This document shows positions 11,619 to 17,600 of a DNA stretch of 64,000 nt, piece by piece. The notes beneath the pieces are model-generated. The model was not told where the DNA came from. It ran no database searches and was given only the letters and a program-made list of their open reading frames with translations. How positions within the stretch are numbered: the first letter of the stretch is position 1; each line of letters begins with the position of its first letter. The position numbers and the translations under genes are program-made. The DNA lies in assembly GCA_020137815.1 (NCBI GenBank), contig CM035361.1, positions 5,146,001 through 5,210,000 of the forward strand, written 5' to 3'. The DNA comes from Hormiphora californensis. Lineage: Eukaryota; Animalia; Ctenophora.

Positions 11619-14600
11619 TTACATCACTTCGTCCATAGGATCAGGTCCTCTCTCCACGGGCAGCTCCCTATCAGATTGCCTGTTTCCCTCCTCTATCCCA
11701 ATCTCCACGGCCTCCCCTGCACCACACCCACACGGGCAGGTCCAGTTGAGAGCGGAACTAAAGACACAACTGACAGGGAGGACCAAGAGCACGGCACACT
11801 CAATCCCAGGAAGGGGGGCCTCATCACGGAGCAGCGACCACACCATGACACACACCCGGAACACCCAGACACCGAGCTTGGTAGCGGCAATTAGACCAAG
11901 CCTGATGTTAGCCTCAGCGGGCCGTTCTTCTTCATCATCCCTGGTGATCTTACAGCACAGCATCCTCAATAGGAAGAGGGAGAGGAAGAGGGAGAGTGTG
12001 GAGAGGTAGATGGTACGGTAGAGGTGAGTGCCACCCTTGAGGGGATCCCCAGTGCAGATGGGCGAGGACCCGTAGTAGTGGAGATCGTGGTAGCTGAAGG
12101 TGTCAGGGCGGTTCGTGAGGGAGGTAAGGGACTCAACCATACCCACAACTGTCGGGTTTGTTTTGTTGTCCTGCACAAAACTGTCATAGATCTTCTGGAG
12201 GTTGGTGGGGTCCCAGTTGACACCGGGATCTTGATCAACTTGCCAAAACGGGTTATCGGGGTTCATTCTCACCCAAATACGGAATGTATCCGACATAATT
12301 CCGTGGTTTGCAATTGGAAGAAGCGCTTGACACACCACAGGGACGGTTAAAAGGATGCCTGCGATGTATGTACCCGGTCCAGGTTTATCGCCACTCCGTG
12401 CACGGGATATCGCAAGAAGGAGGGCTGTAACAAGGGAGCCATGCGAGGAAGCACTGAACAGCACCCCCATCGCCTTACACAAACCTCCAGAGCGCCATTT
12501 GTAGTCATTCAGACAGTAGGTATTGTCGTAGAATGTGTTTGCACCCAACACTATTCCCAGGTAAACACCCATCAAAGACTCGTAGAATGAGAGTTGTGCA
12601 CGAATGAGGCGATCCCAAACGGATGATTCGCTGCACACCATCAGGCTTATGACATTTGCCAGGGCACCACCGAGAATTACAATCACCATGGCAACACACC
12701 CGTGCTCAAGTCCATCTACTGCCAGGATGTACCGCATGTTGGATACGAACCCCCACCTGTCATCACATCCCAGACACTCATCAAATCCGTTCTCACAGTC
12801 AGGATATCCATCACACACATGGTACAGCTCAACCCACGTGATTGTTGGGGTTCTGCTACAGTAAAACCTGGGAAATATGGCATGTGATTTGAACGGAGTT
12901 CCATATTTGGGCATATTTATATTACAATGACGTCATCAAATGACCATATAAGGATATCACGTGATTATACCTGTCCAGGCAGTATGTCTCGTCAACGCCG
13001 CTGGGACAATCAAAGACGCGATCACACGTGTATTCTGTGCCGATTAGAGAATCAGAACACGCAAACGTATAGGGTGTGTCAGGGCTAATGGCAGTGTTCA
13101 CCACCCTCCCACAGTACTCTTTCATTACTTCATCTCTCTTGCACCTGGGGGACGGGGCAGTAAAATCAGGTAGCAGCTTGCGGTGAGACTGCTACTTTAA
13201 CTAGAGAGAGAGAAGGGAAGAGAGACGTGATAGAAAGCGATCCAACTCTGGCTGGTCTTACCAACCAGGAACCGACCGACACAAGTAAACAACCAATCAG
13301 AACTCGTTATTTAGGTCACGTGACTGGTTATCAGCCAATCAGGAAATACTGGCCCCGGACCAGTATTTCCTGATTCGGTCGGTTCCTGATATCCAGTGTC
13401 CAATCCTATATATAATGGCTGCAGACACTGTGTAAAGAACAATTCAACTGCAATACTCACTCGTTGAAGCAAACATCAGTAAAATTAATGCCGATCTCTC
13501 CACGGTATTTCATCTGCATATCAATTGACCGGTGTTTATCCATGCACCTATTTTGTTCTAGAATAAAGAAACCCGATCCGTGCTGCACTGCGTTGCAATC
13601 CATACTACAATGCGTGGGATCTGCAATGTTTGATATATGAGGCTCGACGTGGAGTCCAGAATTTAGTTTCTCTGGTGTAAATGACTGTAACATTGCCCTT
13701 CCTTCGGTTTGGTGAGACAAGCTGTGTATTATGTACCATACAAGAACCGACCGAAACAAGTAAACAACCATTCAGAACTCGTTATTTAGGTCACGTGACT
13801 GGTTATCAGCCAATCAGGGACCAGTATTTCCTGATTCGGTCGGTTCCTGGTACCATACTATTATGATATAATGGTATAATGTACAGTGAGGAAGTTTTGT
13901 TTTCTCCTTCCGGCTGGACAAATGAGTAGACGTAGATTTTATTGTAGAATAACGCTATCAATTTCGGCGCACAGCACCATCTTCAGGCTCAAATTAATTT
14001 GTTTAAAGTAGTGTTGAAAAGTTTCAAACTTTTCAACACTACTTTAAACAAATTAATTTGAGCCTGAAGATGGTGCTGTGCGCCGAAATTGATAGCGTTA
14101 TTCTACAATAAAATCTACGTCTACTCATTTGTCCAGCCGGAAGGAGAAAACAAAACGTCCTCACTGATATGGTCATTTTTTTTTAACTTGTGCAAAATTT
14201 TTTCCGAAAATGACATAAGTTCAGTTTTTTCGACTTTTATCATAGTTTTTGTCAAAAAATATTATTTTGATAATGAACTACATTAGCCGTAGTATTATGC
14301 ACTATGCTGCAGGGACATCACACACACACATCACCCACACACATGATATTGATCAAGCCTGAACAACAGGTTATTGAATCAATCGACCGTTCAACGGTAC
14401 GAGGTGCCATCACTGATTTCGTGCAGTTGATCCGAGGATCACGAATTCAATTAATATGTCGTGATTACTGTTTAATAGCCCAACTGGTCATTCCGAAAAA
14501 TCAGATACAAACACATTAATGTGCTGCACTGTATATGAGTTACTCCAACCCTCCAGTTTCAATGCTTGTTTAACGAAGGAAGTAACCAAGCGATCCACTG

Positions 14601-17600
14601 GATTCGATATATCTAGGCGCATATCATATTGCCACAGTACTGATGTATTAGCACTATCTTTATATCGGATATCTCGAACAGCAACAATCCTTGTATTTAA
14701 ACAGGGTTCTTGCTTTCTAACCAGTTAGGCGTATTAAACAGGGCACGTGTTAAACAGTAATCACGACATATTAATTGAATTCGTGATCCTCGGATCAACT
14801 GCACGAAATCAGTGATGGCACCTCGTACCGTTGAACGGTCGATTGATTCAATAACCTGTTGTTCAGGCTTGATCAATATCATGTGTGTGGGTGATGTGTG
14901 TGTGTGATGTCCCTGCAGCATAGTGCATAATACTACGGCTAATGTAGTTCATTATCATGATATGTGAGCGCTGCAGATAACATGTGCCCTGTTTAATACG
15001 CCTAACTGGTTAGAAAGCAAGAACCCTGTTTAAATACAAGGATTGTTGCTGTTCGAGATATCCGATATAAAGATAGTGCTAATACATCAGTACTGTGGCA
15101 ATATGATATGCGCCTAGATATATCGAATCCAGTGGATCGCTTGGTTACTTCCTTCGTTAAACAAGCATTGAAACTGGAACTCATATACAGTGCAGCACAT
15201 TAATGTGTTTGTATCTGATTTTTCGGAATGACCAGTTGGGCTATTAAACAGTAATCACGACATATTAATTGAAATATTATTTTCCAACGAATATTATGTG
15301 TAAAAGTGTATAGGGAATAGATTTACAGGCAAAATAAATTAAAAACTCACCTCGTGAGGTGCCGGTGACCATGTTTGCAAAAGCGTGTGCCATTCCGTCA
15401 AATTTTAATATTTTTTCCTAAAATTTTCGAAAATATGCTGAAAAATGTCCATAATAAACACCATTAAAATATGTAAGCAAACTTACTCAATCTATGAGGT
15501 GCAACCGGTGTTTAAAGTTACACTGTATACTTACAGCTACTTTTAAGCCCGTAGCACCTCACGTTTCACGACTTTTCCTAGCTAGATACTTGCAGTAGAC
15601 TCAAAACCATCATTTGTACCAAAAAAGTTCCAAAAATTTTGCTCAATGAGTGAGGTGCACCCAAAAAACTGTATTTTCTTCAAACGCTAATTGCACCTCA
15701 CTCAGTGAGTATATAGTTCTGAAAGTGGCCTTAATTTGCTCATATGACATCCCCAAACACTACCTAATCGATTCCAAGGTCATTGCTCAACCTGTGAGGT
15801 GCACTGGAGAAGTAGGTAAAATATGTCATTTTTTGAGGGTCTGCACCTCACTCGCTGAGTAATTTTTAGAGCAAATTTTCGGTAAATCAGGAGGGAAATT
15901 GTCTAATCTTGCTTTATGCCAAGTTTCAATTCTTTATTTACTCATTTGACCCCTAGTGAGTAAACTTTTAGCTCTAAAATCGGCTTGCACCTCACCAAAT
16001 GAGTAAATTTTTCCATGGTTTTCACCTCATCTGATGAGTGAGAAATATCCCCACCATTTCTGAAAGTTTGGAGATTTTTGATCAAACGGTATTTCTACAA
16101 ATCGGGGGCACCTCACGATAGCACCTCACGGCGTAGAAATGCTATAGCACCTCACTGGAGTAAGCTAGAGACTTCGTTCTTTCACTAAATTGAACTTTTA
16201 ATATTTCTCGATTTTTTGAGGTGCTGAGTAAATTTCCAGTGGCAACAGCTATTTTGCTATGATCATTTGAAAAAATTTGGTAGTTGCACAAGTTAAAAAA
16301 AAATGACCATATGCGGCTAATAAACAATCAACCGATCCTTATTCTCGGTATAATGTACACTTGTAATCAGTTACATATATCCGTACCAGGAACCGACCGA
16401 ATCAGGAAATACTTGTCCCTGATTGGCTGATAACCAGTCACGTGACCTAAATAACGAGTTCTGATTGGTTGTTTACTTGGTTCGGTCGGTTCCTGATCCG
16501 TACTTATCATGATTATGAAGTCCGAAAAACAGAAAACAGATGGTCGGACAATAATGGTGAAGTATTCCGAAGTAGCCGTTAAACAACCCGCATCTTTCGT
16601 ACCTGATGTGAAAATATTAGGAAACGATGGTACTATACTCGATATAATATAGCTTGTTCTGTTCTTAAAGAGGGTGGAGCGCACGGAAAGAGGGTCGAGC
16701 AAGGTAAGATTTGGCTTTAGTATTTACCATCGCACGAGGTTTCATCTTCACCCCCCTTACAATCTGGCATCCCATTGCACAAGTTTGCAAATGTTACACA
16801 CCCTTCACCGTCTCTACACTGCATCACCTGTCATATATATGTGAATTTTATATTGAAGTAGATATTGGAGTAGTATATATATGCATTACAGATTGGAGTT
16901 AGGAGTATCACAGTAAAGCAGCGGGGAAAAACGAGCAATTGGAGAGTATTGGAGTGTATTGGAGTGTATTGGAGAATGGAGTGCAGTATTGGAGTGTATA
17001 ATTGTGTGGAGAGAATTTTTGAGCTGACCTCAGACTCGGTGCAGGAACATTCATCAGTTAGACAGTGTGACACTCCATCACACATGAACCTTCTTGGTAG
17101 ACGACACTGCCAATCAATCTAAAGAAATGTAATGAAAACATGGCTAATCAATCAGTAGGAGGTTAACAATAAATTGATAGTTAAATACGGATTAAACAGA
17201 CTATAGCAGGGCTGATTATGTATGCATATTGCATACCCTATTATCAGATTGTCTTGTTCGACCCTCTCAGAACAAAACAGATATATTTACCTCCATGCAA
17301 TCTTGTCCTGAACCATCGTTACAGGTGGACAGTAGGGAGGGATTAAAGGGACAGGTAAAGAATTCATCATCATCTCCATCATTCAGTGGATCTATGACGT
17401 CATTCAGTGGGTCTATGACGTCATTAGTCTGTGTGACGTCACTACCACGGTAAAGAGATATTCCAGCAGTGGGGAAAGCGTTGCACGGCGCATTTTCACG
17501 AAATTCTCTCTCCAAGGGACCTGGGGGAGTTGATAAAATTAAAATTTACCGTTTGATAAAAGTAATTAACTATAATGTTTTCTAAGTAACGATGCTTCTT

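Follow-up and report, generated by a model that had tools for sequence, protein, structure and literature searches.

Short Penelope-like insertions headed by the host spliced leader in the ctenophore Hormiphora californensis, and their probable origin from trans-spliced element RNA

A copy of the spliced leader (SL) of the ctenophore Hormiphora californensis lies in the genomic DNA at positions 14020-14062 of a 64,000-nucleotide stretch of contig CM035361.1 (assembly GCA_020137815.1, positions 5,146,001 to 5,210,000; referred to here, at its full length, as the window), where it is joined directly to part of a Penelope-like element (PLE) with a hammerhead-like core. How does a host leader come to form the 5' end of a mobile element? 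We assign a probability of roughly 0.85 to the reading that a PLE RNA bearing the host SL was retro-inserted, and that host trans-splicing would set the 5' end of this RNA beside the hammerhead core.

The insertion is flanked by two exact copies of a 13 bp target site duplication (TSD), GGTATAATGTACA, at 13873-13885 and 16347-16359, and is built of two arms arranged head to head. The forward arm starts with the 43-nt SL and runs on into a 104-nt segment of the pseudo-long terminal repeat (pLTR) of the element (14063-14166), which opens with a junction base C and the hammerhead-like core (14063-14089): CTGAAGA at 14064-14070, an unpaired T, helix II GGTGC/tgt/GCGCC at 14072-14085, and GAAA at 14086-14089. 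The same segment, which about 40 other genomic copies match at 97-100% identity, includes an AATAAA at 14107-14112 and a conserved CATTTGTCCAGCC box. The inverted arm, on the reverse strand, contains the pLTR segment in reverse complement, extending from the hammerhead core to ...CCTCAC and lacking the tail (13886-13987), followed by the reverse complement of SL nucleotides 7-43 (13988-14024). The two arms (13884-14024 and 14026-14166) are 141 nt each, are 99% complementary, and meet at a palindrome axis of a single nucleotide, C14025. Their boundary is ambiguous by 5 nt because the leader 5' end, AGTTT-C-AAACT, is self-complementary and places the axis inside the 43-mer, and the terminal 2 nt (CA) of the left TSD copy may just as well belong to the inverted arm as its end. 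A 38-nt tail, ATATGCGG...TTATTCTC, is present on the right arm, where it is split into ATA (14167-14169) and TGCGGCTAATAAACAATCAACCGATCCTTATTCTC (16312-16346) by a nested terminal inverted repeat (TIR) transposon of 2,140 bp (14170-16309). The sequence is continuous at this point in other copies (cactgaTAtgcggc), and the loci L076, L066 and L090 have the unbroken 38-nt tail. Once the transposon is subtracted, 321 bp of insertion remain, made up of the inverted arm, then the leader with 104 nt of pLTR, and the 38-nt tail.

A first-pass annotation made from the sequence of the window had treated 13886-16346 as one insertion with a 13 bp TSD, an inverted arm and a tail of about 40 nt; these three components stand, but 14170-16309 is a separate mobile element. 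The string C-CTGAAGA-stem-GAAA...AATAAA that it described after the 43-mer is present in full at 14063-14112. Its identification of the 43-mer as a spliced leader is also correct, although the 43-mer is not a clean unit, as its first 5 nt (AGTTT) overlap the axis and are also the end of the inverted arm. As part of the overall explanation favored here, what remains after subtraction of the nested transposon would be a 'mini' PLE insertion made of two head-to-head cDNAs of an SL-pLTR RNA of about 185 nt.

The 43-mer starts with AGTTTCAAAC, ends with AATTAATTTGAG, and is identical to nucleotides 2-44 of the published 44-nt H. californensis leader, which Schultz et al. 2021 (PMC8527503) found on 56% of Iso-Seq reads and interpreted as the product of trans-splicing. 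Its last 22 nt occur twice in the window, compared with no occurrence in 100 shuffles, and 564 times in the assembly. At 30 unselected SL sites the leader is joined to many unrelated downstream sequences. The full leader is encoded in the DNA, as it would be if the 43-mer were an SL RNA gene, intact or decayed, that lies beside a PLE or was captured by one, and so were a source of leader and not a product of splicing. However, where such a gene would have a GT donor and an intron with an Sm site, C14063 directly follows the leader exon, as the first-pass annotation had pointed out, and the downstream sequence is pLTR. In addition, the same fusion recurs elsewhere with different TSDs, and the sequences that precede the SL in other copies are mutually unrelated. 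We consider this origin hardly credible.

Copies of the pLTR that lack the leader reveal what stands at the junction in the element itself. The 104-nt segment has 43 matches in the genome at 92-100% identity, and about 25 distinct copies without an SL (among 30 loci read; 97-99% identity) have the sequence ...tttttctaacatgtatattccgtatattatAG/cCTGAAGATGG, the slash here marking the junction. In SL-bearing copies the sequence is ...AATTTGAG/cCTGAAGA, such that the leader end AATTAATTTGAG directly precedes the same element base. In the native sequence, ...TTCTAAC-N22-TATTATAG/C-CTGAAGA, the junction is immediately preceded by TAG, and a CTAAC branch-like site has its A about 24 nt upstream. As predicted from these motifs, the pLTR carries its own AG acceptor and branch-like site exactly at the SL junction, abutting the hammerhead core; an acceptor at this place was a feature that the first-pass annotation had anticipated in unspliced copies. 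The alternative that the native acceptor region is itself a decayed leader left by an earlier cycle was rejected, as its alignment to the leader is no better than that of shuffled sequences (0.25-0.52 of shuffles were at least as good). We also note a 155-nt contig from a seawater run in which the 104-nt pLTR segment (L076:1500-1603), without the tail, is joined at the same AG/C base to an unrelated sequence ending in CCAG. This could be a cis-spliced RNA or another DNA insertion, and a single contig of low depth settles nothing.

Four sequenced SL-bearing insertions of the window family each have the complete leader at the 5' end of a TSD-flanked copy, as expected of an SL-tagged retrocopy. 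Their TSDs differ, and the window insertion, L074, L063 and L090 therefore represent independent events. L074 has a 12 bp TSD (GAAAAGTATATT) and its tail on the opposite (left) arm; L063 has an 11 bp TSD (GGATTCAGTAT) and an inverted arm that is only as long as the tail; and L090 has a 12 bp TSD (CAAATTATATAC), an inverted arm of 12 nt and a tail followed by 3 additional nt. One more SL junction of this family, the fifth, lies at C6:61377 and is known from a pattern match only.

The arrangement is not confined to the window family. A search for the SL followed within 0-10 nt by CTGANGA identified 151 junctions in the genome and none in a reversed control. Among the 100 of these that were listed, the spacer is 0 nt in 39, 1 nt in 28, 2 nt in 15, 4 nt in six and 6 nt in 12, and 21 head-to-head pairs are present. 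Eight of the 30 unselected leader sites are of this SL-to-core type, and the junctions fall into at least 12 families. In a second family, with helix II GACGT/ACGTC, 27 of 36 exact cores are fused to the SL; at least 62 matches to this family form units of about 100 nt, often as inverted pairs, with no direct pairs 3 kb apart. The short hammerhead units are dispersed or head to head, and do not form the head-to-tail arrays that characterize retrozymes. A pattern scan of metagenomes for the junction gave 80 matches, all attributable to chance and none with the leader upstream.

Template jumps by reverse transcriptases (RTs) are common among retroelements, and a fusion could arise without trans-splicing if the PLE RT, on reaching the 5' end of an unspliced RNA, switched to a second template, either an SL RNA or an SL-capped mRNA. 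This idea gains some plausibility from the complexity of PLE insertions and from the joining of the two arms at their own 5' ends. However, all junctions fall exactly at the 3' end of the SL exon (...TTTGAG) and, within a family, at the same element base in independent loci, a base that is preceded in unspliced copies by AG and the CTAAC branch-like site. Moreover, a jump onto SL RNA would be expected to copy its intron, and a jump onto mRNA to copy the body of that mRNA. Template switching is for these reasons an improbable source of the junctions, and trans-splicing of the element RNA remains the preferred one.

A further possibility is raised by leader copies that are followed by GT, of which there are 96 in the genome. 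A dispersed SL copy with a GT might act as an ordinary first exon and be cis-spliced to the pLTR acceptor, and Schultz et al. 2021 (PMC8527503) did map leader 'first exons' to nearby leader loci. Against this, the frequency of the leader on Iso-Seq reads was attributed by the same authors to trans-splicing, and the GT-bearing copies include a tandem array of the kind typical of SL RNA genes. This array (G000:C13:3189668-3194147) contains six leader copies followed by GT, all on one strand and spaced about 731-756 bp apart with one double gap, giving a repeat unit of about 745 bp; these are probably the true SL RNA genes. We give the cis-splicing explanation little credence; the main conclusion would be unchanged under it, because the pLTR site acts as a 3' splice site either way. 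Among the 718 genomic copies that were reported and treated as leader loci in the published analysis, many are retro-copies and not SL RNA genes, and at least 151 are PLE junctions.

The element to which the leader is joined can be recognized from its longer copies. The pLTR segment is found in direct repeats 3.2-3.3 kb apart (C3:415312/418577/421923 and C7:1748390/1751605), giving a unit of about 3.2 kb. An open frame of at least 518 codons starts after one pLTR (L076, L067), and a 397-codon frame ends about 310 nt upstream of the acceptor of the next pLTR. The C-terminus of the open reading frame (ORF) matches the GIY-YIG domain PF01541 (E=2e-6, 28.4 bits against a cut-off of 22.6; residues 294-382 of the last 397 amino acids), and inspection of the translations reveals KTHK..RPIVS, GxxMGxxxSP, YIDD and a GIY-YIG block. 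A Pfam scan gave no direct RT match on either piece of the ORF, and a sequence search of the PDB with both pieces gave no match. Database homologues (E down to 7e-107) are 740-890 amino acids long, lie on contigs of 2.4-3.7 kb, and contain RVT_1 (PF00078), GIY-YIG and PF26215; atlas clusters carry the same domain set. The insertions also have the signature of PLEs, with an adjacent inverted copy, a 38-nt tail that in the window is on the right arm only, and TSDs of 11-13 bp. On the strength of the GIY-YIG domain, the RT motifs, the RVT_1 and GIY-YIG homologues and the tandem units, we classify the window family, by sequence criteria, as a canonical endonuclease-positive (EN+) PLE, in agreement with the earlier proposal that the sequence downstream of the leader is PLE-derived.

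The pLTR ends in the 38-nt tail, which holds the first in-frame ATG of the long frame (ctgatATGcgg, L076 1607), so that in full-length copies the ORF start codon lies inside the tail and the acceptor about 107 nt upstream of it. The same splice would therefore yield a capped mRNA for the RT-EN protein. The hammerhead core itself holds an upstream ATG (AAGATGG), from which a 13-codon frame read from the sequence ends at the TAA of AATAAA. An AATAAA about 40-50 nt after the core, followed about 20 nt further on by a (C)ATTTGTCC box, recurs across otherwise divergent pLTR families (window 14107-14136; L006, L017, L038, L040, L046, L051 and L053). Together these may be a poly(A) signal and part of a module at which reverse transcription starts.

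The best explanation of the observed anatomy, leader identity, acceptor, element identity and genome-wide recurrence is a scenario in which we infer the splicing event, the order of events and the step that joined the cDNAs from the genomic copies. A transcript passing through a pLTR would be trans-spliced to the SL at the 3' splice site of the pLTR, abutting the core, to give a capped RNA that starts with the SL (43-44 nt), continues through 104 nt of pLTR and extends into what follows. The RT/GIY-YIG protein of a PLE would cut both strands of the target, and reverse transcription would begin at two internal sites 38 nt apart, one just before and one just after the 'tail'. Both cDNAs would reach the 5' end of the RNA and be joined head to head through the self-complementary end of the leader, leaving a 141-nt palindrome with the tail on one side and a 13 bp TSD, into whose tail the TIR transposon would have landed later. 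Two features of the window are accounted for by this scenario. The axis is 1 nt wide because the 11 nt at the leader 5' end are self-complementary, and the tail is one-sided because RT starts at two adjacent internal sites whose spacing equals the tail. Annealing between the 3' ends of the two cDNAs is compatible with the sequence at the axis. There is a precedent for these steps in the Anolis PLE protein, which cleaves the two strands of the DNA and extends both, initiates reverse transcription at a pair of neighboring internal sites, and uses uncleaved RNA as its template (PMC11167929); an inverted copy and a tail of 30-40 bp are likewise typical of PLEs (PMC8557442).

The scenario raises the question of what becomes of the hammerhead. 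In 12 families the residues C1, G3, A4, G6 and A7 of CUGANGA and the GAAA are invariant, and in 12 aligned hammerhead-like sequences a single unpaired base precedes helix II, a trait described for the minimal hammerheads of PLEs (PMC4209133). Helix II covaries among the 12 families, with 95% of cells paired compared with 68% in shuffles (0 of 500 reaching this value) and 18 double changes compared with 4.2; controls in which the helix was slid out of register pair in 18-49% of cells. By inspection, GAAA is followed by a quasi-palindromic AUUGAU and an A, which could form a dimer-type helix III if G.U pairs are allowed. Assuming cleavage after AUUGAU-A, only 2 bp of helix I (G-C, C-G) can be drawn, in the unspliced and SL-spliced RNAs alike, and the terminal AG of the SL would keep these pairs in place in the spliced form. 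Six native nt are retained at the junction in two families, in one of which, at L017, about 4 bp of helix I appear to be kept. The first-pass annotation had proposed that the RNA loses the 5' strand of helix I through splicing, and that splicing competes with ribozyme cleavage; as judged from these predicted pairings, the proposal is not supported in that form. Refolding of the hammerhead by the leader was likewise not adopted as an explanation. In minimum free energy (MFE) folds the core of the spliced RNA is paired with the SL, and the unspliced RNA forms helix II, but neither fold is better than those of shuffled sequences (z +1.3 and -0.9). The DNA does reveal that the templates of these insertions were uncut at the hammerhead-like motif. 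In the second family, truncated copies begin at many positions, none of them the predicted cleavage site, although this is weak evidence as the alignment ends are imprecise.

A separate observation concerns L081 (G000:C10:3435611-3435789), a head-to-head insertion of the window family that has no SL. Its forward arm begins 6 nt upstream of the core, and its inverted arm begins at C34 of the segment, within 1-2 nt of where the palindromic helix III model would place cleavage; it is an isolated instance.

Several observations weigh against the trans-splicing origin. The junction is ambiguous by 2 nt because the SL and the native upstream sequence both end in AG, and the acceptor is demonstrated for one family alone, as unspliced copies were recovered for one family only. 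The SL junction was not seen in four public sequencing runs, of which three were marine metagenome or metatranscriptome runs that yielded a few environmental contigs of 115-174 nt, and one, bearing the species label, contributed no contig. Rfam reports no hammerhead at gathering score over the window, nor at E<=10 on 13800-14300, and the motif is named here a minimal-type hammerhead-like core, recognized by its invariant core and covariation, for this reason. The same scans gave no SL RNA family and returned only hairpin-miRNA matches, which are false because they are caused by the palindrome. Finally, a tblastn search of 60 SL loci found no PLE ORF in an SL-bearing copy, with only a stub encoded in the pLTR being matched. 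The recurrent product is therefore the short SL-pLTR unit, and an SL-capped full-length mRNA is something that we infer and do not see; a short unit is what would arise from reverse transcription begun at the first internal site of a spliced RNA, or from splicing of the 3' pLTR. None of the refuting conditions named in the first-pass annotation held: the 43-mer is on mRNA 5' ends, unspliced copies of the window family have an AG at the junction, and the downstream sequence is PLE-derived. With these points weighed, the genomic DNA copies still support the first-pass proposal that the element RNA was trans-spliced 1 nt upstream of the core, within the 2-nt ambiguity, and then reverse-transcribed.

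A more speculative possibility, which we think rather unlikely, is that the SL-headed pLTR minis are a promoter-less, self-renewing class of non-autonomous element. Because the retro-inserted leader ends in AG, any host transcript containing a mini could be trans-spliced once more at the identical position, and this would regenerate the same capped RNA of about 150-190 nt, complete with its RT start sites. In parallel, the acceptor and hammerhead of full-length elements could form a module that switches between a capped mRNA, when spliced, and a processed RNA, when cleaved. The predominance of SL-fused cores in the second family (27 of 36), and the absence of 3-kb direct pairs among its 62 or more matches, fit this possibility. 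It is not helped by the outcome of a pattern search of the genome for relict tandem leaders (a leader followed by a leader minus 3 nt), which gave no matches at up to one mismatch.

Among the various other leader copies, we note a group in which the leader (its end at 1522, in SL orientation) is joined within 10-45 nt to multi-copy ORFs of 320-500 amino acids (L001, L004, L010, L012, L015, L020, L021, L024, L025, L027 and L029). A conserved GC hairpin, GCCCC-loop-GGGCAG, is found in the short 5' untranslated regions of most of these families. The atlas clusters closest to them are large sets of hypothetical proteins restricted to ctenophores. Such copies probably represent additional mobile RNAs that were SL-spliced and retro-copied. 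Domains found in SL-headed ORFs include a PHD finger (L007), a weak match to a CCCH zinc finger (L009 and L011), and a 2OG-Fe(II) oxygenase with a GDSL lipase (L028). No RT or endonuclease domain was seen within the 1.5 kb examined at L007, L009, L011 and L028, and a Pfam search of their second ORFs gave no useful match.

The nested transposon at 14170-16309 has perfect TIRs of 29 nt and a TA target duplication, one copy of which is the TA at 14168-14169 in the tail. It is a separate mobile element unrelated to the PLE insertion, with at least 35 other genomic copies at 95-100% identity, and has therefore been recently active. Within it are interlocking perfect inverted repeats of 213, 201 and 96 nt (14263-15273), and a repeated GCACCTCAC / GTGAGGTGC motif with a spacing of about 144 nt (15346-16156). 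The PLE insertion itself lies in the middle of an older 124-nt inverted repeat (13730-13853 and 16383-16506; 93% complementary), and its target was itself a palindrome, probably a mobile one.

How PLE RNAs obtain their 5' ends and caps, and what role the pLTR hammerhead plays, are standing questions for which these insertions provide a natural record equivalent to 5' rapid amplification of cDNA ends (5'-RACE). The template RNAs would have begun with the host leader and still held an uncleaved hammerhead motif, in agreement with the use of unprocessed RNA as template in vitro (PMC11167929). The retro-copy status of leader loci also matters for the annotation of first exons in the Hormiphora genome.

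In most respects the Hormiphora elements resemble canonical EN+ PLEs (PMC4209133, PMC8557442, PMC11167929), with a single ORF encoding RT plus a GIY-YIG domain at the C-terminus, tandem pLTRs, a hammerhead motif of CUGANGA, one unpaired nt, helix II and GAAA, an adjoining inverted copy, a one-sided tail of 30-40 bp, a variable TSD and an uncleaved RNA template. They differ in that the inserted RNA has the host spliced leader as its 5' end, at an AG acceptor abutting the core. Trans-splicing and spliced leaders are not mentioned in three accounts of PLEs (Cervera & de la Pena 2014, PMC4209133; Craig et al. 2021, PMC8557442; Frangieh et al. 2024, PMC11167929), and our literature search found no publication that links PLEs with SL trans-splicing in a relevant way. 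The closest parallel is with Penelope of Drosophila virilis, in which, according to Arkhipova et al. 2003 as cited in PMC4209133, the 3' splice site of an intron maps to the pLTR hammerhead, at the 5' end of its helix I. Spliced and unspliced RNAs have different hammerhead contexts in both systems; the Drosophila intron is cis-spliced, whereas the Hormiphora acceptor would take a trans-spliced leader, the product of which is recorded in 151 genomic junctions. A 3' splice site at the 5' edge of the hammerhead is seen in a ctenophore, with trans-splicing, and in Drosophila, with cis-splicing, and the relationship between splicing and the ribozyme is therefore directly testable.

Non-LTR retrozymes (bioRxiv 10.64898/2026.07.22.740005) are also short ORF-less hammerhead units derived from pLTRs and mobilized in trans, but they form tandem arrays and are thought to produce circular RNAs, whereas the Hormiphora units are dispersed monomers or head-to-head dimers headed by the SL. 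In dinoflagellates a DNA-encoded leader at the 5' end of a retrocopy marks RNAs that had previously been trans-spliced (PMC6050394, PMC5585692). The Hormiphora insertions share this mark and differ in lacking detected tandem relict leaders and in that the tagged RNAs are those of a retroelement, inserted by its own PLE machinery. In Schistosoma mansoni, SL-containing copies of retrotransposons were suggested to be reverse-transcribed trans-spliced RNAs (Boroni et al. 2018, PMC5832876); the six cases described there, for which assembly error was not excluded, had no link to an acceptor, a TSD or a ribozyme, whereas in Hormiphora the junctions, the acceptor and the TSDs are resolved.

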